Shown here in pieces: positions 5,251 through 23,120 of a stretch of DNA of 64,000 nucleotides. Both the position numbers and the translations under genes were made by a program. Source of the stretch: Trichosphaerium sp. ATCC 40318 (taxonomy: Eukaryota; Protista; Tubulinea); assembly GCA_038496445.1 (NCBI GenBank), contig JALMLS010000057.1, positions 62,001 to 126,000 on the forward strand, written 5' to 3'. Numbering within the stretch: position 1 is the stretch's first letter; each line of letters starts with the position of its first letter. The notes beneath the pieces are model-generated. The model was not told where the DNA came from. It made no database searches and worked only from the letters and a program-made list of their open reading frames with translations.

Positions 5251-7427
5251 TTACTCTGTTGGTTGTTGTATTGCTTCCGATACTACTGTTACCAATTTAT
5301 CAATGTTTTGCTTCCAAGTCTTCAAGCGACCTTGAAGGTCTTTCCATTCTGGTGGACCAAAAGAACGCAACAATGAGTGCCTAAAGGAAGAAAAATTAAT
5401 CAAATGAGAAAAAAAAACCACAGCGAAAAAGGAAGGGCAGTTGTTCTTTGAAAGAATCGTTTTTCTTGCGTACGTTACAATTACAGATGACGTGTTCTGG
5501 TCGAGTCTGGCTGTAATGACCTTTGCAGCGATTGCTTTGATAACCCAACGTTCTACGTTTTCTTCATCGGTCTAGTAAATCAAAAGTCAGAAAAAGTTCT
5601 TTAACTGAAGCGATCACGAATTTTTTTTCTTGGCTTTTGTTTTGTTTTAGAAAAAAAGTCTGACAGAAATTAAAACTCTCATCAATCGTATGAATAATCA
5701 GTAATCAGGGGATCGGACGAAAAATAATCATAGAGTTAGAACCAAGACAGTTTTTTCTTAATTTTTTTCAAATACGAAAAAAAAAATTTGAAAGAAATTT
5801 GTTGTCTTACCTGCAATGCTTGTGCAACTTTTGAATAAGGTAGTGTAGATTCAACACTGCATAATGTAATAAGAGATATCAAACGCATTTTCTCCAATAG
5901 TTGTTCGGAGTTCAAGCCTACATATAAATAAATAAACTAAAGATGACACAACGGTCATTTCCAAAACTTCTTTTTTTTTTTGAATAAAAATTTCACACAT
6001 TCTCTAAGAGAAGATTTGAAGACTTTTTTAACAATTATGTAATAAACGCGCGTGTTAATGACTAATTTATGAAAAAAAAAATTGTTGTTCAAGCTGTACC
6101 TGTTTTCTCCAAAAATGATTTGTTTGCTTTTTCAAACTCCATGAAGCTAGATGTATCTTCCTTTGTAAAAATCTCAACAATTCTGTAATACAAAGCGTCA
6201 TCTCCACCCTTCTTTTTAAGTCCTTCAAGTAATTTGCAAGAAAGTAAATCATCGAATCTGTAGGACACTAAAACAAAGCCGTTGAGCATCACGAACACGG
6301 GGGAAAAAAAAAAAAAAAGTAAACAACTCTTCTAGTGCGGCTTTGAGACTTTATGAATTCCTGTCTAAGATTCTTACCTTTAAGCGCTAGAATAACAGCA
6401 TTTCTCATACACTCAAGAGCAGTTTCAAAGGAGTCACTGGCTTCATCTGGATCTTCGAAATAATCAAAGTATTTCTTCATAAAAGTGAGTGTTTCTTCAG
6501 AACTAAACGTTTCTCATTAGTTCTGTTCTTTGGTTTTAAAGCAATTAATTGCAAGTCTTTCTGCAAGTGTTTTTTTCACGCTTTAGACTATAAGACGCAC
6601 TCTGCGTTTTGTTGCTGACCAATGTTGGCAATCAATTTGTATATCTGGCGTTTCTGTGCTGTATCTGCTTGCCAACCGCTCAAACGTGACTCTATGTTAC
6701 TAAAATCACCAGACACTTCAGATCCTGTATTGGATTCAAGCGCAAATGCCAATAAACGTGAGTAAATAGCGAAACCTTGTTTTTTTGCGTCAAATAAATT
6801 GTACAAGCTAGCCAAACTAAAGGACGTGAGTAATTGAGCGTGAAAGCAGCTATAAGCGTTGTTTAAAGTTTATATGATTTTTCTTTTTCTCTAACGCGTG
6901 AAGTAGTTGATATAGAGACACGCACACATTGAGTTTAGCTTTAGGTGTAGTTTTTGGTTCTATCGCGATAGTATCCAACAAACGAGGTGTCATTTCAGCG
7001 ACGAAATCAGCGTCTTCTTTCAAGAGTATAGAAGTGAATAAGGTGAGTGCTTTTAATGCGTCTAGTGAATAATAAGTATTGTTTAACGTAGGAAAATATT
7101 TAGCGGCGTAAATAGCGAGCAATAGTAGATACAAAGCTACGTTTACGCATACACAACGTTTTTTGTACAGAACTAAAAAAATCGAGCATTTCGTTTGTTA
7201 CCTTGCTCTCCGCCCTCTACCCATAACAATTTATGGTGTTCTAACAGTTTTTCAAGGATATCACGGGCATTTTCGTTCTGTAATAGCTGTTGGAATTGCT
7301 CAGAAAGAGAGGTATCTTTATCTCCACCAGCTTGCTCATCGTCTGAATTAGCGAGGCGCTCATATAATGAAGCTAATAGCAATACTTGATCTCCATCGTC
7401 AGCAAGGTCCACTACACAAATCGACAT
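5251..7427 (-). CDS. EIF3M: Eukaryotic translation initiation factor 3 subunit M (PCI domain)
   Basis: LASLYNLF..., FDDLL, EKMRLISL..LPYSKVAQALQ..VERWVIKAI..ARLDQ..RSFGPPEWKDLQGRLKTWKQNI follow the eIF3m/CSN7-type PCI pattern. Confidence 0.85.
5674..5737 (-). ncRNA. Candidate box C/D snoRNA in an eIF3m intron
   Basis: Terminal stem AACTC/GAGTT; C-like ATGATTA; guide TTTTTCGTCCGATCCC then D' CTGA; C'-like CTGATTA; D-like ATGA. The guide is complementary to GGGATCGGACG, which resembles the SSU rRNA segment ..ACTAGGGATCGG.. Confidence 0.55.
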
Positions 7428-14492: not shown

Positions 14493-16492
14493 ATGGAAGA
14501 CTCTGTAGACGTAGCTAAGGCAAAAGAGGAGGCCCGTCTAGCGGCCTCCATGCAGAGGATCAAAAATAGGGGTAGCATGAACCTAGTACGCAAAAAGGAC
14601 GTCGCTGCGCGTAAGCCACAAATAAAAGCGCCGTCTGTAAAAGCGGAAGAGAAAAAAGACTCCACGGCCAATAAACCAGTACCAAATTGGCGCAAACAAA
14701 GAGAAGAGAGAGCTAGGCGAGACAGAGAGGAAGCTTTACGGCGCCAAAAGGACAAAGACGCCAAGATTCACGAGATCGCTGCGCGTGCCGCTCTAATACG
14801 GGAGCGCAAGCCAGAACACGACGCCATACTTGAAAAGATAAAAACTGGTGGCGCAGTACGTCCTATACGAGCGTATTCGCGTTTTGGTTTCGGCGATCCT
14901 GAAAAGGACGCTACTACGCGTAAAGGGGGCGCCACAGGGCCAAAACTGAAGTCTAGCCCAAAAGAGGCTAAAACTCCCACCGTTACGAAAACCAAAAAAG
15001 ACACGCAATTGGATGTACAAGCTGACAAGGTACTTTTACACGCGTAACAGGCACTAAAACTGAAATTTCAATTTTTAGGATAGTACAAAGCAATCACCTG
15101 GAAAGGATATAGACGATTTTGTAGTGGTCGAGGTACTAGTTATAGCAACTTGCTTTTGCAGTAGCGTGGAGTGTAGCCAAAAGAATTCCGTTTGATCTTA
15201 TTTCGCCTCTGTAGGACGGTGGTGCTCACGAAGAAGAACCTCCTGGTTATGACAAGTTAGATACGTCAACTACAAAAGAAGAAAGCAGCACAGAAGATAA
15301 AGAAGATGTCAACGAAGAAAACGACGTTGACGAATCGGCTTCAGACTCCGAAGATGCGTCACCAGAGGAATCACCAACAGAAGAGCCTGAAGAATCCCCT
15401 GAACCAGAAACTAAGAATGAGACTCCAGTAGCATCTCCAGTAGCATCTCCAGAGCCATCGCCTGAAGCATCACCTGTGGCTTCACCTGAGCCATCACCAG
15501 AACCTTCTCCAAAAGCTTCACCAAAAGCTTCACCTGAGCCATCACCAGAGCCTTCACCAGAACCCTCACCAGAAGCTTCGCCTGAGGCTTCTCCTGAGCC
15601 GTCACCGGAACCTTCACCAGAGCCATCACCAGAACCTTCTCCAAAAGCTTCACCAAAAGCTTCACCTGCGCCGTCACCAGAGCCTTCACCTACTCCTTCA
15701 CCAAGAAAGAGTCTTAAACTTGACCTTAGTGCTGATGCACAGTCTGAAGAAGATGAGCCTATAGCTCAAACAACATATCGTTCCGATGCATCAGACTCAG
15801 GTGAACCTGTAGTCTACGGTGATGTAGAAACACCTAAAACAGAACCAGCTACACCAAAAGCTATAGAGTACGTTAAAGAACACTTTCTAAGGTTGTTATA
15901 ACAATTACTAGGCCTGAGCCTGAAGACGAGGTACCATTATCTCCTCGCGGAGGAACAGTACAAGAGACATACGCATACGAATCAGAGTATTCTCTGGAAG
16001 GTATCGGTGCTGTTGAAGCAAATAGTAGCGGACGAGAGTATGAAGATGAAGATATTACAATAACATATGGAGAACCTGATATTATGGAGACTCCAGAACC
16101 TCAAGATGAGTCTGATGAAGAGGTTGAAGATAATAATGATGAAGAAGTAAATACAGATAAGTCTGAAGAACCGAAGCCTTCATTAAAATCAAAGAGAAGT
16201 ACAAAGGAGAAGAAGACAAAGAAAAAATCCAAGAAATCTAAAAAAGGTGCTGAACCTTCTACAGGAAAGAAGAAAGGGTCTAAAAAGAAAAAAGGAAAAG
16301 AAGACCTTGATGCATCTGGTTCAAAAACAAAACGAACGAGTACGTCCTGTCTAGCTGAAACAAAGAAAACTTGCTTTTTTTTTTCTTCTGCTCTTTTACT
16401 TTTTCTTTGTTCTTCTTTTTTTCTCACCTTTTATGATAGAGAACTCTAAACGTAAAAAGACAAAAAAGAAACGAGATACAAGGATGGAATGA
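14493..16492 (+). CDS. Low-complexity, probably disordered protein (coiled N-terminus, SPE[P/A] repeats, acidic and Lys-rich tail)
   Basis: Exon ORFs 14493-15029, 15215-15869 and 15912-16339 linked by GT-AG introns. Confidence 0.7.
15422..15701 (+). repeat. Coding 12-bp minisatellite (TCACCAGAGCCA-like) encoding S-P-[E/K/V]-[P/A] tetrapeptides
   Basis: More than 20 degenerate 12-nt units with a duplicated higher-order block. Confidence 0.9.
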
Positions 16493-16579: not shown

Positions 16580-19500
16580 TTATTCGTTCGATTTCTTAAT
16601 AGTTTCAAAGTAGTGATTGAGGTATTTTTTACTTATAGGTGGAGAATATAGACCTACAAAACAGTGAGCGAAGCCAAAAAATATTTGAAGGCACCTGTCA
16701 CATGTGTCATGTTTTGTGTTTTGAACACGTGGTTTTTTGCTGGAAACAAAATTTTTTCGATTGGCGTCTTCCTGAGTGAAACTTCTGTAGCTAAAGGAAG
16801 AAATACCGAAAATGGACCTCCTTAGAGCAGGTTTAGAAATGATTGAAAGAATATCATTTGTTGTTAGGAGTGTACCTGATTGTTGTAAAGATTTAGACCA
16901 CATTTCAAAAGGTATAATTTTGGTTTGTACTCTGCTGTATTGTGAATGAGCTTGACACAATTCCTTTAGGTTAATGTGCCCATCGTTGTTAATATTGAAT
17001 ACAATAACGCCCGTTTTCAACGGTGAACTAGAATGTGCATGGTGTACTTTACGTATAACAGTAGTAGCATGATTAACCTCAGGTAAGTAAGTTCATTCAA
17101 AGAAAATACCAGAATGACGTACAGGGCAAATGTCTGTCTCAAAGTATTCCAAGTCAGGAATACCTTGCATGCTTATTGTTTGTTTCAGTAACCTGGATAG
17201 CCAATCATCGGGCGTATCTGCTATAATAGAGTGACAAGATATCAAGCTAGGACGATAAATGTAACCCTACTTCTTGTTAACAAGCAAACAAAAATCAACT
17301 TTTCTAAATGGTTGTAGAGCGTACTACTAATCCTCTAGTATTACAAGCTTCCTCAATAACTGCTTCAGCAACTAATTTAGAAGCTGCATATCCACCGTAT
17401 ATAACACCATCATGTTGTACTATCGAGGTAGCAGTGATAGTCTCATCAACGACCTAACAATCATGAGATTTTGTTGTTGCTCCTGAAATACCTTAGGTGC
17501 AATACTTGTTGCTGTAACTACTGATAATGTTGATACATAATGCAAGTATTTTCGTTTTGTTGTCAAACACAATTTAAGTATAGTCTCAGTCCCATCAACG
17601 TTTGTAGATTTTATCGAAGAGAATGGCTTTAAAACATTCACTTCTGCTGCTACATGAAAAACTACATCAACCTCACTACATAATTTATCCCAACCTAATG
17701 CACAATATATAAGCCAACATTAATCTTAACATGTTTAGGACTAAGCTATTTTTTTCTATCTCGACGTTTGATCTATCAATCTCAAAAACAAAGTTTCTTT
17801 ACCTTCAGTACATAGGCCAAGGTTGTTTTTACTTAGATCAGTCTTAGTAAGAACTGTGACACGCTCTTCAAATGCTTCTTTCGTAATATAACCATAATGT
17901 TTATTCAATTCCAACCACACTCGGTCTTCTATCTCGCCTCTAACCTATTCAATCAAATCAAAAAAAAAAAAAACAATGAAGCGACGTACTGTGCAAAAAA
18001 ACTTGAGCTTAGTGTTAATCAATAAATCTGCTAGTAGGTGCTTTCCAAGAAACCCTGTAGCTCCTGTAATCAATGCTACTTTAGGTGCATCAGTTTTTTC
18101 TACAATTGGAATATCAGACAGTTGTTCAAGTCTTGCGGTTATTTCAGACTTTACGTCATCAAGATACGAAAGTCTTATCTCAAAATTATCTTCCTATCTC
18201 GGATTTAGAGGCTCCAAAACTTTGAACAACTTCGTTGTGTACCTTTCCTTCACTATCTTGTGTAAGTTTATGTAATGACTGTATCGTTGGATCATTTAGA
18301 AATGAGTGAATACCAATATTGATGCCTTTCTCCGAAAGTGTATTCAGGAGCATTACAATTCCCAATGAATCTAGGCCTTGTTCAATCAGGTCAATATCCT
18401 CATCGATATCGCTACGTTGAAGGAGCTTTGTGCAAGTATCTTTTATCAAACCAAGTACACTTCGTTCTGTATCTGAATTCTTAGTCTTTTGCTCTGTTTG
18501 TCTGCTCTTAAACAGTCTCAAAAGCTCTTTCCTGTCAATTTTTTCGTTTGTGTTCAAGGGAAAAGTATCTATGTCTATCAAGATTGCAGGCACCATGTAG
18601 TTGGGTAGTTTTGTTGCAAGAAATTGTCGCAACACCTTAGGTTCAAAATCACGTGATTTAACTTTAACAAATCCAACAAGTTGGTGTGTTTCAGTTTGAT
18701 CTCGCTTGACAGCAATAACGCAACTCTAAACACAGTCAAACTTGACGTTAATATACTGGTTCGTACCTGTAGTACATCATCATGTGCCAACAAAACAGTA
18801 TCTATTTCACTAAGTTCTACTCTGTATCCTCTAATCTTTACTTGACTGTCTTTTCGTCCAAGAAATTCAATACCATTCCTGTAAACAAATGCTGTGTTCA
18901 GAATTTGATATGTATTTAACAACTTATTGTACGTACTTCGTTAATCTACCTAGATCCCCTGTGCAATACATTCTTGTACCATCGAATAAGCAAGGGATAA
19001 ATTTATGTTTGGTGAGCGCAGGTCGATTATGATAACCACGTGCAACGCCTACTCCAGAAATACATATTTCACCTTGTAAATAGATAAGCAAATACAAGTT
19101 ACTATGAATATCGTTACCTTGCTGACCTACATCTACTTTTTTGTAGTTATCATCAAGTATGTACATGTTTGTATTAGGTATAGGCGGTCCCAGGAGACGA
19201 TTAGATTGTATTTCTATGAAAAACTGTTAACTTAAAAAATAACAATTAACTTGCCTTGATGTTTATTGTACACCTTTAAAGTTGCTGCAACAGTTGTTTC
19301 GGTAGGTCCATAAACATTAACTAAGTGGACACGTTGACGCCACCTATTAAGGATATTTATAGGACACAGCTCACCGCCTATTATTACTGTTGTTAAACAA
19401 GTTGGTAAACTCGACAACGGGAGGTTAGGTAGAAAAGCTGGTGCAATAAATAAAGTTGATATTCTCATCTCTAGTACTACTTCTAGAAGTCTAGGTCCTG

Positions 19501-20644
19501 GAACCTACCTAACATTACACCTGCAGAGTAATACACCTCCGTACCTTTAAGATATCGCTATTTCTAGGCAAGAAACATAGTGTTGCTCCTGACAATAACC
19601 TAAACAAAGCTCTGAGAATAACAGAACCTTATTAAAGAATGATGTACGTTGTTCCAAATTCGGAAAACGAAGCGTCAAAGCATAAAGGAAGCAATGATAA
19701 TGATCTATGCTCTGATGACATTTTAAAAGCATTGATCTGAGCTTCAATAAAATTAAAGAGGCCTAAAAAAGAACATGTTAATATTGGTTTACAAAACTGT
19801 TGGGTGTTACCTCTATGTTCTACTTCTACACCTTTAGGTTTTCCAGTGGATCCGCTTGTGTAGATAATATAACTGGCTAGCATAAGTAGGTGTTCATAAC
19901 AATGGAGCTTACGCTAAATCAGACGGAACAACACAATGGCAATTCTCTAGACTCCATTTTTCTAATTCATTCTCGCACGTGCCCAAATCTATGCATTTAT
20001 CTGCAAGTAATGTAGGAATCTTTAAATGTTCAACTAGTGGCGATACACCTGAGCTTCTTGTTAACACAATTACAAGAGAGTTACTAGTGTTCCATACCAG
20101 GAAGCAGGGATTCTGTAGTTATGAGCATATCCGGGTTGGCATCTATGTGCCAATGAGTTTAAAATTCCAAACTACTTTAAGGCACCTTCAATAATGTTTC
20201 GTGTTCTATCTGGTGGCGCAGTTGTTGAAATAGGTATGTAAACGCATCCTACACGTGTGAGATTACTTAAAGCCCATCAAAAAGCGTACCAGCGTAAAAT
20301 ATGCCAAATAAACTACACAAGTGCCAAAATCCTCTTTCAAAGCAAGCCATAACGTGGAAAGAACGATCAATACCTCCCCGTGCGGTCTTAATTTGACGCC
20401 TATCATTGTTACATTTCATTTAACCTACAAACGCTACCAACCCTATTTGTACGCTACCACTAAGAAGTTCAGCGTAAGTATACGCACGATCAGGCATTTC
20501 GACAGCCACTTTCTTTGGCATGCTATGAGCGACGCTCACAAGCACGGAAAACATATCCCTGAACTGAGGGTTGTCCATATCTTTGTTAACGGAAGGTTAA
20601 ATTCACATTAAACGTCAAAAAATACAAAAAATGCCCGCTGTCAT
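16580..20644 (-). CDS. Single-module NRPS-like enzyme: adenylation - carrier (T) - thioester reductase (R)
   Basis: A motifs YTYAEL, YIIYTSGSTGKPKGV, FDAS, NVYGPTETT, GEICISGVGVARGY, YCTGDLG, GRKDSQVKIRGYRVELSEI, LPNYMVP, NEKIDRK; T motif GLDSL; R motifs ITGATGFLG, GYAASK, YRPS. Start is 20644 (via a GC-AG intron) or 20578. Confidence 0.92.
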
Positions 20645-20696
20645 TAAGTTGCCTTTCTTTAAGTTTTCAGCCAACGTGAACCCACCTATTTTTTTC

Positions 20697-20778
20697 GACT
20701 ACTTTATTTTCCGCACATTTGGTTCTACTGTGAAAAGCACAGCGATTAGATTTCCCAAACTTACATCATCTAGTAGCC
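20697..20778 (-). promoter_or_regulatory. SECIS element (eukaryotic type II) in the 3' UTR of the PhnD-like gene
   Basis: Helix I GGCUACU/AGUAGUC (7 bp); core A-UGAU/GGAA with tandem G.A/A.G; helix II GUAAGUUUGG/CCAAAUGUGC (9 of 10 pairs); unpaired AAA 12 nt after AUGA; helix III UCUA/UAGA plus CUGUG/CACAG closing a CUUUU loop. Confidence 0.85.
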
Positions 20779-20818
20779 ATGCATTACATTGATTGTTCCT
20801 TTGTTTATGAAAATATCA

Positions 20819-21784
20819 TCAAATGTCACCAAACGATGATAATGTCACTGTGCGTGAAGTTTGCACCACTGTTTCTATTATTGAGTAGTCTGCTTCTGAG
20901 ATTGCCACAAATCGCTCAAATCCCAAAGTCTTGAGAGCACGCTGACCTTGAGTCGTAGTGTGTAGATTGACCATTGCCTCACGGATAGCGTTTTGGTTCT
21001 TTTCTGCTACTCGCCGAGCAATGACGAATGGTTGTATTGGGAGAGGTGTTGTAGTATCTATGATGCGTACTTTAGCTTCGAAACGATGTTGTAGTCTTTT
21101 GTAGACTTGTTCGTCTACGAAAGCACATGCTGCTCCACCAGCTGATACTAAGTTTAGAGAAGCTTCATGCGATCCCTGTAAAGCGTCAGAGGGCGCTTAA
21201 ACATTAAGTGAAAGAACACGTACAGTTTCAATAGCGTAGCTGAAAAACTTATTTTTGTTACGCTGGTTTAGGTACCATTTAGCCGATAAGCATCCCGATA
21301 GCGAATTCGCATCGTTGAAAGCGACAATTTTGCCGTTTAAATCTTCAATGGAATTGTAGGCGCTATCTTCGCGCACAACCAAGTACGAGGTATAAACTGG
21401 GTGACTCTTGCCCTATATAAGGTTAAAAACAAGCGGACAAATATTCTCCGATGCTAAGTACACACCTCTAACACAGGAGCCACTAGGTAGTCGAGAATAT
21501 GCGACTCCTTAGTGGCCAAGTACGTTGGGGATCATATCCAACCAAGCTCAGCTGTATTAAACCATTTGTGTACATTAGAAGGTGTAGGGCCAGAGCAATG
21601 TGGAGAACCAGCGATGACTTCTATTTGTCCTTCCTCAAGCTTATTACTCAACGCGCCGTGCTACATGCGTTAGAGAAGGTAGCAGGTCAATAAGGGAGCG
21701 TACTAAGCCGTCTGCTAGTTCTTTCATTATGCCTGGTGGCTGTATGAAACTCACAATGGTGAGCGATGGCTCATGTATAGACAT
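20819..21784 (-). CDS. PhnD/phosphonate-binding-fold protein, probable selenoprotein (Sec70), ~273 aa, no signal peptide
   Basis: Exons 21704-21784, 21466-21660, 21224-21412 and 20819-21175 with GT-AG introns. PhnD-type motifs YTSYLVVREDS, IEDLNGKIVAFNDANSLSG, TGSHEASL, FVD, PLPIQPFV, GFERFV. In-frame TGA at 21532-21534 in ELGWI*SPTY, with a SECIS downstream. Confidence 0.85.
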
Positions 21785-21933
21785 GTGCTTCGTGATAGAA
21801 ATTGTGTGTTGGATTTCAGCGTATTTGCCTACCAAATAAACGCGTCATGACGTTTGCTGAAATGCGCGTCACGTGATGCTAAAAACCATCTAAGGCACCA
21901 GATTGTTGCACAGCTTAATTTTAAAACGCAGAA

Positions 21934-23120
21934 ATGTCTTGCTGTACGTGGCTGTTCGCTGTTGTGGCGATTTTGGTGGGTATATTGTTTGTAACAACTC
22001 CAGACTTACTACACCCTCAACGAATTGTAACAGTAGCGTTTGGGCGCTCACAGTTCATTGGTAGTATTAAGAAGGTAGTTGTAGAGTGGTTATACGACTA
22101 CATGGCATCTTCGTTTCCTCAAGACTTTTGGACATGCATGAACTACGGATACGCCGAACTAGATGATGTTGCGATCGATGAGAATAGCGATAGGCCTAAA
22201 GAGCATTTTAACTTCAAAATGTATCATCACACAGCCAGTTTAAGCCCCCATGGAGAGTCTTTTGAAGATTTAGACGTTTTAGAGATCAGTTGTGGTAGAG
22301 GCGGCGGAGCAAAATATCTAACCTCGTGCGCTCTCTAAAACGCGTGACATGTGCAACTGACGCTATATTATAGCGTATTCAAGCCAAAAAAATACTTGGC
22401 AACAGATTTATCAAACAGCGCTGTCGCATTGTGCAACAAACTACACAAAGACGTGATAGAAGACGGAGTATTAAGTTTTGATCAAGGGGACGCTGAAAAT
22501 TTAACAAAAATAGCTGATTCGTCTTTTGACGTCATTATTAATGTCGAAGCGGTGCACGCTTTTGGTAACATTGACAAATTTGTCGGTGAAGTAGAAAGAG
22601 TTCTAAAACCACAAGGTAGGATAGACAACAACCTTCCAAATCATTCTCAACAATTCTCGCTAACATACGAAAAAAGGTTACTTGTTATTGGCAGGTTTCG
22701 TTGCAACAGAAAATTTGGAATGGCTCAAGTACGCCTTTTCCTTTTTTTTTCTTGTTTCTTTATGACACTCATTATAGAGAGCGACTACAAAATGGCGGTC
22801 TAACGATAAAGAAGACTACAGACATTCGTCCTAATGTATTAAAGGCATTAGAAATTGATGAGCCAAGGCGAGCATGGCTAATAGACCAAATAAAAAATCC
22901 TTTGTTTAAATTATTTGCTACTGGATTTGCTGCAATGTACGCCTTTTCTACTCAATAGGATTACAGAAACCTTAACTTTATTGTGTAGGAAAGGAACTTC
23001 TATGCGTGCTGGATTTGAGAAAGGTGACACTGAGGTACTATTCAAGTAACCAAAACACAAAGTAACACGCCCATTTAGTATGTCTCATTTGCTCTGCAAA
23101 ACGGCCCAAAAACTCAATAG
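21934..23120 (+). CDS. Class I SAM-dependent methyltransferase with N-terminal signal/anchor (resembles the mycobacterial phthiotriol/fatty-acid O-methyltransferase type)
   Basis: MNYGY, VLEISCGRGGG (motif I), TDLS, QGDAENL, FDVIINVEAVH, VERVLKPQG. Confidence 0.85.

Follow-up and report, generated by a model that had tools for sequence, protein, structure and literature searches.

We asked whether a minus-strand gene in a 64,000-nucleotide stretch of the genome of Trichosphaerium sp. ATCC 40318 (GenBank assembly GCA_038496445.1, contig JALMLS010000057.1, positions 62,001 to 126,000; the whole stretch is called the window here, and positions are counted within it) encodes a selenoprotein of a kind new to eukaryotes. 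A UGA codon together with a selenocysteine insertion sequence (SECIS) element within the 3′ untranslated region (3′UTR) is the eukaryotic signal for insertion of selenocysteine (Sec). A first-pass annotation, made from the sequence alone, had pointed out both features at this locus. The evidence assembled here makes it probable that the gene represents a new eukaryotic selenoprotein family, in which the UGA at codon 70 is read as Sec.

A spliced gene with a single in-frame TGA

Once spliced, the minus strand from 21784 to 20816 gives a four-exon gene of 273 codons followed by two stops. The TGA at 21534-21532, codon 70 in the context AELGWI-U-SPTY (U, Sec), is the sole interruption of this frame. 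The three introns, the frame of about 273 residues and the lone TGA had all been described in the first-pass annotation, and their coordinates check out; each intron is GT..AG and lies in phase 0. Exon 1 (21704-21784, 27 codons) opens with the ATG at 21784-21782, which is the first in-frame ATG because a TGA stands in the same frame upstream, at 21847-21845, as read from the sequence. It is followed by intron 1 (21661-21703, 43 nt), exon 2 (21466-21660, 65 codons including the Sec codon at 21532-21534), intron 2 (21413-21465, 53 nt), exon 3 (21224-21412, 63 codons), intron 3 (21176-21223, 48 nt) and the coding part of exon 4 (20822-21175, 118 codons). The Pfam family PF12974 (Phosphonate-bd; gathering cut-off 27) is matched by exon 3 at 3e-12 (46.8 bits, profile positions 83-137) and by exon 4 at 6e-20 (72 bits, profile positions 143-242), so that the two exons cover consecutive stretches of the profile. 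The tandem stops TGA TGA (20816-20821) lie 6 residues past the end of the family profile. Because the introns are spliceosomal, the gene is a genuine nuclear gene and not bacterial contamination.

Contigs from public runs (X1, X5, X6 and others) were compared with window positions 20300-22300. The 931-nt contig X5 spans 20689-21763 with all three introns removed. The contigs X1 and X6, which come from other studies, carry the strain differences A>G at 21137 and 20772, and their TGA is identical. Exon 2 is covered without mismatch by X5, X1 and X6; the joint left by intron 2 is present in the same three contigs, and that left by intron 3 in X5 and X1. In addition, the Joint Genome Institute (JGI) transcript contig L002 equals the spliced model exactly, from 17 nt upstream of the ATG through an A-run past the 3′UTR hairpin discussed below. 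Intron 1 is missing from L002, and exon 1 is found in its spliced form in L002, X5 and X1. The 5′UTR (21785-21814) is given as far as transcript contigs extend, X1 reaching 21814. Spliced contigs that keep the TGA come from three studies, and the presence of the codon in such independent data sets (X5, X1, X6 and L002) shows that splicing does not remove it and that faulty sequencing did not create it, which disposes of the two artefacts that the first-pass annotation had named as fatal to its proposal. Its expectation that automated annotation would fragment the gene also held: the JGI gene caller divided L002 at the TGA into ORFs (open reading frames) of 74 and 187 residues. Between the TGA and residue 218 there is no ATG, so the conserved C-terminal part of 203 residues is obtainable only by reading through the TGA.

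Two side observations concern the same transcripts. The last codon of exon 1 (21704-21706) is CTG in the X5 and X1 contigs and TTA in the genome and in L002, both encoding Leu. X5 is otherwise identical over its 931 nt, and CTG may belong to an allele whose 5′ splice site has a better context. Also, a 60-nt X1 contig omits the 59 bases 21520-21578, which are bounded by GT..AG on the plus strand, and this suggests a spliced antisense RNA. A skip of 21520-21578 on the sense strand would drop the TGA but shift the frame.

Cysteine at the TGA column and a second TGA gene

With exon 4 as the query, 1.84 billion representative proteins were searched exhaustively without a profile. The search returned the C-terminal ORF of the gene itself (P0001), a 44%-identical fragment (P0002) and relatives in the several hundreds at 25-40% identity, of which many span 250-300 residues and have no signal peptide. 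In a MAFFT alignment of 98 full-length homologues, 91 have Cys at the TGA column. Around it the consensus reads D-(L/V)-(A/G)-(F/W)-(I/V/L)-C-(G/S/T)-x-x-Y, and its counterpart in the window protein is E-L-G-W-I-U-S-P-T-Y. Across the nearest sub-family's bacterial genome loci, the codon at this site specifies Cys without exception (74/74), and it is TGA in none. These counts agree with the first-pass claim that the UGA falls on the family Cys and not on a Trp. Conservation on both sides of the UGA, which it had named as a check, was found as well: the family profile runs through the TGA site and scores 226.4 bits when the upstream residues are included and 217.1 bits for the C-terminal piece alone, a gain of 9 bits, with strong upstream conservation only across the 8 residues that adjoin the site.

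The closest sequence relatives, at 33-40% identity, are leaderless bacterial PF12974 proteins with the motif (A/G)(F/W)(I/V/L)-C-(G/A/S). These uncharacterised proteins resemble the window protein in length and in having no signal peptide, and they have the Cys column and a P-I-Q-P motif in common with it; a sub-group shares an SGP insertion. They differ from it in having Cys in all 74 of the loci mentioned above, no UGA, no introns and no 3′UTR hairpin. The gene probably reached the protist lineage from bacteria, with the change from Cys to Sec and the introns coming afterwards. Leaderless PF12974 proteins with the invariant Cys are common in Rubrobacteraceae, Acidobacteriota (Thermoanaerobaculia), Planctomycetota, Chloroflexota and Acidimicrobiia.

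The metagenome contig L001 (1.4 kb) encodes a 45%-identical orthologue. Its intron (L001 141-183) has the position and phase of intron 3 of the window gene. Metagenome contigs scanned with peptide patterns from the alignment of the window protein with P0002 gave no further orthologue; a degenerate DNA pattern for T-x-PLPIQPFV, run on metagenome contigs, gave 9 matches, all by chance, and again no orthologue.

Truncated database proteins that begin just past the Cys column were examined as possible additional Sec forms. One of them, P0117, was rejected as a mis-called start with the Cys intact. Another fragment, P0091, begins shortly past the column, and its source contigs, L016 and L017, proved to be a true second TGA case. 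They are transcript-like contigs of two other runs with the in-frame context AEVAFM-TGA-GPPYV, the N-terminal part of the family 5′ of the TGA, and a TAA stop at the family end. Over 229 residues, L016 has 30% identity to the window protein, and the stop-interrupted positions of the two align with each other. Both carry an S-G-P-T insertion ahead of the Sec, of which S-G-P is found in the bacterial sub-group. A quick free tree placed L016 apart from the pair formed by the window protein and L001. A tree in which these three were constrained to form a clade was 126 log-likelihood units better and was not rejected by the approximately unbiased (AU) test (p-AU 0.97), so the free search had missed this clade.

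The recurrence of the TGA also bears on the simplest alternative, that it is a true stop and the gene makes a 69-residue peptide or is a decaying pseudogene with a relic frame downstream. Standard gene callers do divide the transcript into two ORFs, as such a reading would have it, and the N-terminal piece is poorly conserved. Set against this are the 203 further codons that stay in frame across three introns with all pocket motifs intact, the same TGA in the strain variants X1 and X6 and in a 30%-identical relative, and a correctly spliced mRNA of appreciable word depth. Moreover, a conserved structured 3′UTR is not expected in a dead gene. A true stop is therefore extremely improbable.

Both TGA transcripts can form a 4-bp hairpin a few bases past the UGA: CCAA-CGUAC-UUGG in the window (21516-21528, minus strand) and CCAC-CGUAC-GUGG in L016 (226-238), with one A-U pair replaced by C-G. 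This could be an element of the Sec-redefinition type or a by-product of the conserved P-x-Y-(L/V) codons.

A SECIS-like hairpin in the 3′UTR

Minimum free energy (MFE) folding of the minus-strand segment 20697-20778 gives a hairpin of -22.7 kcal/mol (z-score -2.56), in agreement with the type II SECIS shape reported in the first-pass annotation. Helix I has 7 bp, and the internal loop that follows places AUGA (20766-20769, 5′ side) opposite GA (20710-20711, 3′ side). Helix II, which we count as 11 positions with one A.G mismatch, leads to an unpaired G-AAA, whose AAA (20751-20753) lies 12 nt past the core. The apex consists of a 3-bp helix, a 4-nt bulge, a 6-bp helix and a 5-nt loop. The hairpin shares with eukaryotic type II SECIS elements its place in the 3′UTR, helix I, the UGA/GA sheared core, the 11-position helix II, the unpaired AA(A) 12-13 nt past the core and the extra apical helix. 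The 3′ internal loop also holds AAUAAA (20703-20708), a probable polyadenylation signal. Transcripts end 2-14 nt past it, at 20689-20701, so that the 3′UTR (20689-20815) is little more than the hairpin, which occupies most of its roughly 120 nt.

A strict SECIS-like descriptor found 2 sites in 128 kb (both strands), the window hairpin being one, against 0.03 expected in Markov-shuffled sequence, a comparison to be read with the fact that the descriptor was devised after the candidate had been seen and its thresholds were fitted to the window hairpin. The second site, 6202-6251 on the minus strand, is a chance match, since it lies within a coding exon and folds no better than its shuffles (z +0.44).

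Comparison with L001 gives support of another kind. The same shape folds 90 nt past the TGA stop of L001 (z -3.49), and a covariance model built from the window hairpin alone had one other match in 178 kb, a full-length one to the L001 3′UTR (39.4 bits, E 6e-7). When the two hairpins are aligned, 96% of cells are paired and 6 of the 26 pairs are changed on both sides, that is, compensatory; slid controls gave 29-48% paired and 0-2 such double changes. Between the two hairpins UGA, GA and AA are unpaired and do not vary, with GUGA in L001 for the AUGA of the window. The fold, the descriptor and the L001 alignment all support the GA on the 3′ side of the core, as they do the hairpin as a whole.

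The second TGA transcript has a similar arrangement at L016 950-1008, with AUGA, a helix II of 9 pairs in 10 positions, an unpaired CCAA, a 3-bp apical helix and GA. The UGA of the core is thus invariant in all three hairpins, and AA occupies the corresponding unpaired place in L001 and L016. A relaxed descriptor, whose thresholds were loosened to let in L001 and L016, matched L002, L001 and L016 once each, always in the sense 3′UTR, compared with 2.4 matches per 128 kb of random sequence. An alignment of the three hairpins by MAFFT and RNAalifold was discarded because it was misaligned.

Several observations weigh against reading the UGA as Sec. The first-pass annotation had named a failure of the hairpin in SECIS models as telling against its reading, and the curated Rfam model SECIS_1 gave no score on the window hairpin or the L001 3′UTR. 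The whole window was scanned at the gathering score, and stretches of 1.6 kb, 231 nt and 121 nt at E<=10, with the L001 3′UTR among the sequences covered; these scans returned only sub-threshold noise from small nucleolar RNA (snoRNA) models. The apical part, 27 nt past the AAA, exceeds in length that of most SECIS elements described, from which the window and L001 hairpins differ by this long apex and by GUGA for AUGA, respectively. Helix I of L016 has only 4 bp, and that hairpin was recognised by eye and by the relaxed descriptor; a covariance model built from the window and L001 did not detect it. L001 is truncated ahead of the Sec site, so the UGA is conserved in two lineages and not in three. 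Finally, the N-terminal 60 residues of the window protein barely resemble the family (-1 bit alone), though they align in the right order, and the N-terminal 69 residues had no match in the PDB or in a collection of 5.8 billion proteins.

These points leave room for a UGA that is read otherwise than as Sec, either by near-cognate read-through or as a lineage-specific Cys or Trp codon, with the hairpin serving mRNA 3′-end formation, stability or the binding of an L7Ae-type protein. The silence of the Rfam model would fit this, as would the AAUAAA inside the hairpin with transcripts stopping right after it, and the small hairpin past the UGA in both Sec-type transcripts. However, the spacing and unpaired motifs of a SECIS element (UGA, 11-13 nt, AA, then GA) recur in three divergent mRNAs, the window gene and its orthologue L001 both terminate with TGA where the family profile ends, and a UGA that falls on an invariant Cys is classically a sign of Sec. 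We regard a non-Sec reading as very unlikely. A tally of stop codons over long open frames left UGA usage undecided and is uninformative, because most frames run into introns.

If the UGA is read as Sec, the type-II-shaped hairpin would recruit Sec-insertion factors and a Sec-tRNA would read the codon at position 70, while the terminal UGA UGA, which is nearer to the hairpin, would end translation. No tRNA gene was found in the 64-kb window.

The ligand pocket, the neighbouring genes and a possible role

Among proteins of solved structure, the C-terminal piece matches ArrX at 2.8e-18 and AioX at 7e-12, and phosphonate and phosphite binders at 9e-8 or weaker; a bacterial homologue matches ArrX at 3e-24 and AioX at 1e-23. 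Judged by sequence, ArrX and AioX, which are sensors of arsenic oxyanions, are closer relatives of the protein than PhnD is. The PhnD-like fold proposed in the first-pass annotation stands in so far as PF12974 is matched above its gathering cut-off, and needs amending in so far as PhnD proper is the more distant relative. PhnD (TIGR03431; PDB 3p7i) shares with the window protein the Pfam family, the fold and the Ser/Thr-x-Ser and His oxyanion contacts, but the score on TIGR03431 is 87.9 bits against a cut-off of 261.1, and PhnD has Gly65 at the Sec position. No genes for the PhnC/PhnE transporter were found in the window. The lack of a signal peptide, also claimed earlier, is supported: the first beta strand starts at residue 8, which leaves no room for a signal peptide, and there is no hydrophobic leader.

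The AioX pocket consists of Tyr88, Cys106, Tyr131, Ser161, Ser163, His192 and Asp210, with arsenite linked to the sulphur of Cys106, and PhnD has Gly (Gly65) where AioX has this Cys (Badilla et al., PMC5908839). The family Cys aligns with the Cys of AioX 'AWICGYPF' and of ArrX 'AFICTYSF', and a residue count of AioX against the published pocket list identifies the Cys aligned with Sec70 as Cys106. The window protein keeps 6 of the 7 AioX pocket positions, with Sec at Cys106. Tyr131 is represented by PVY and Ser161 and Ser163 by NSLSG, the Ser-x-Ser-Gly motif, both in exon 3; His192 and Asp210 are represented by GSHE and FVD in exon 4. The equivalents of these last five residues are kept in L001 and L016 too. 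The placement of Sec70 on the arsenite-bonding Cys would make the metal- or metalloid-binding role guessed at in the first-pass annotation more specific.

AioX, ArxX and ArrX (PDB 6esk, 6esv, 6x6b; PMC5908839) share with the window protein the two-lobed PF12974 fold and are its best-matching solved structures. They are periplasmic and have a signal peptide, whereas the window protein is leaderless and predicted to be cytosolic. It is also eukaryotic and intron-bearing, has Sec for Cys, does not keep Tyr88 and is only about 30% identical to them, and its gene has no adjoining AioS-type kinase or arsenic-metabolism gene. By analogy with these sensors, Sec70 may take the place of the near-invariant family Cys in the inter-lobe cleft, where AioX has Cys106, and the protein may close on a small oxyanion or metalloid in the cytosol that is held through a bond between selenium and the ligand. 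Arsenite or a similar thiophilic species would be the likeliest ligand, and the role would be that of a binder, sensor or hand-off protein and not of a transporter subunit. We give a metalloid-binding function, which rests on this analogy, a somewhat less than even chance.

A gene of the nonribosomal peptide synthetase (NRPS) type, with adenylation, thiolation and reductase regions, occupies 16580-20578 on the same strand and starts about 120 nt past the hairpin; it has many short introns, adenylation motifs, a PP-binding domain and a reductase-like tail. Upstream of the selenoprotein gene and divergent from it lies a class I S-adenosylmethionine (SAM) methyltransferase (21934-22800, plus strand), whose first exon is covered by the contigs X1, X6 and X10. 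It was rejected as an arsenite methyltransferase: its nearest relatives are the fatty-acid O-methyltransferase Mtf2 and phthiotriol methyltransferases, and ArsM models match at E 1e-4 to 1e-2. The domain identities of both neighbours were confirmed, and nothing was found that ties the two genes and the selenoprotein gene together. Neighbours like those in the window are found beside none of the homologues examined, and the 680 nt past the L001 hairpin hold no recognisable gene. Beside the bacterial homologues, a PAS hybrid histidine kinase is nearby in 14 of 75 genome loci (Acidobacteriota and one Planctomycetota), and genes for an ATP-binding cassette (ABC) ATPase and permease precede 9 (Rubrobacteraceae), though the binding protein there has no leader peptide; the remaining loci have housekeeping neighbours. 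Elsewhere in the window, an open frame at 15476-15901 (plus strand) encodes Ser-Pro-Glu-Pro and Ser-Pro-Lys-Ala repeats and is followed by acidic and lysine-rich stretches up to 16449.

Three findings count against an arsenic-related function. AioX Tyr88 has no counterpart, its region being taken up by an H-C-S-G-P-T insertion. Next to the window gene there is no arsenic gene, no sensor kinase or regulator and no arsenic oxidase or reductase. Across the 75 bacterial genome loci there is no constant partner gene, only lineage-specific neighbours, and five further metagenome contexts agree with this.

The Sec-containing protein might instead bind some other ligand: phosphite, phosphonate, selenite or selenide, for example, or else a sulfur or metal species. 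It might then supply the adjacent NRPS-like reductase and methyltransferase within a small biosynthetic cluster. Binding of oxyanions through Ser-x-Ser-Gly, His and Asp is a general trait of the PhnD superfamily, there are weak matches to the putative selenate-binding family TIGR04553, and the NRPS-like gene downstream and the divergent methyltransferase upstream are close at hand. This is possible, if on the unlikely side, given that ArrX and AioX are matched better than PhnD, PtxB or HtxB by 10 orders of magnitude, that PhnD has Gly where this family has Cys or Sec (PMC5908839), and that the neighbours are conserved beside no homologue examined, L001 included. In the bacterial SAO system, the proteins SaoB and SaoX have Sec or Cys in the cleft of a solute-binding fold, thought to ligate a metal or metalloid (bioRxiv 10.1101/2022.07.06.499078; PMC13188914). 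SaoB and SaoX differ in being bacterial, exported or lipid-anchored parts of an ABC transporter, with a bacterial SECIS and the motifs CU, CC and UxP; their NCBIfam models NF040727 and NF040735 matched neither the C-terminal piece nor four full-length homologues at E<=0.01.

Sec is used for redox catalysis in most known selenoproteins, and this counts in favour of a catalytic Sec70, which might cycle through a selenenylsulfide with a nearby Cys, for instance to reduce an oxyanion bound in the pocket. Cys49 precedes the Sec of the window protein by 21 residues, and a Cys of L016 precedes that protein's Sec by 17; both Sec members have such an extra upstream Cys beside the shared SGPT, whereas most bacterial relatives have none. 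On the other hand, these Cys residues occupy different positions in the two proteins, the fold is a binding fold, and the closest characterised relatives are sensors without known catalysis. We therefore consider a redox role unlikely.

The most far-reaching proposal is that the gene encodes a cytosolic Sec-based receptor or chaperone for an arsenite-like metalloid in a marine-type protist, derived from a horizontally gained bacterial sensor gene of the AioX/ArrX type. Among eukaryotic selenoproteins it would be the first to have a solute-binding fold, with Sec as a ligand-binding and not a redox residue. We advance this proposal tentatively, and taken as a whole it is less likely than not. 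The recoding system itself is standard, and what is probably new for eukaryotes is the protein family, its fold and a likely ligand-binding Sec. Known eukaryotic selenoproteins are mostly thioredoxin-fold oxidoreductases. A non-exhaustive search of the open full-text literature turned up no paper on a PhnD/AioX-type selenoprotein. 'The algal selenoproteomes' reports 42 families, and its text makes no mention of phosphonate or arsenic (PMC7539508); a 2026 review of prokaryotic selenoproteins lists the substrate-binding SaoB, SaoX and a BtuF form and nothing of the PhnD/AioX type.

Since gene callers split the gene and its hairpin goes unnoticed by the Rfam SECIS model, similar genes will be undercounted in selenoproteome surveys built on models of that sort. 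The locus would also offer a clean case of a bacterial gene that acquired introns, a SECIS element and a Cys-to-Sec change after transfer, and the family provides a natural Sec/Cys pair for asking whether a selenol improves the capture of arsenite-like species. If the proposal is true, selenium use would be tied directly to arsenic handling, and a Sec in the ligand cleft of a solute-binding fold would widen the known uses of this amino acid in eukaryotes.

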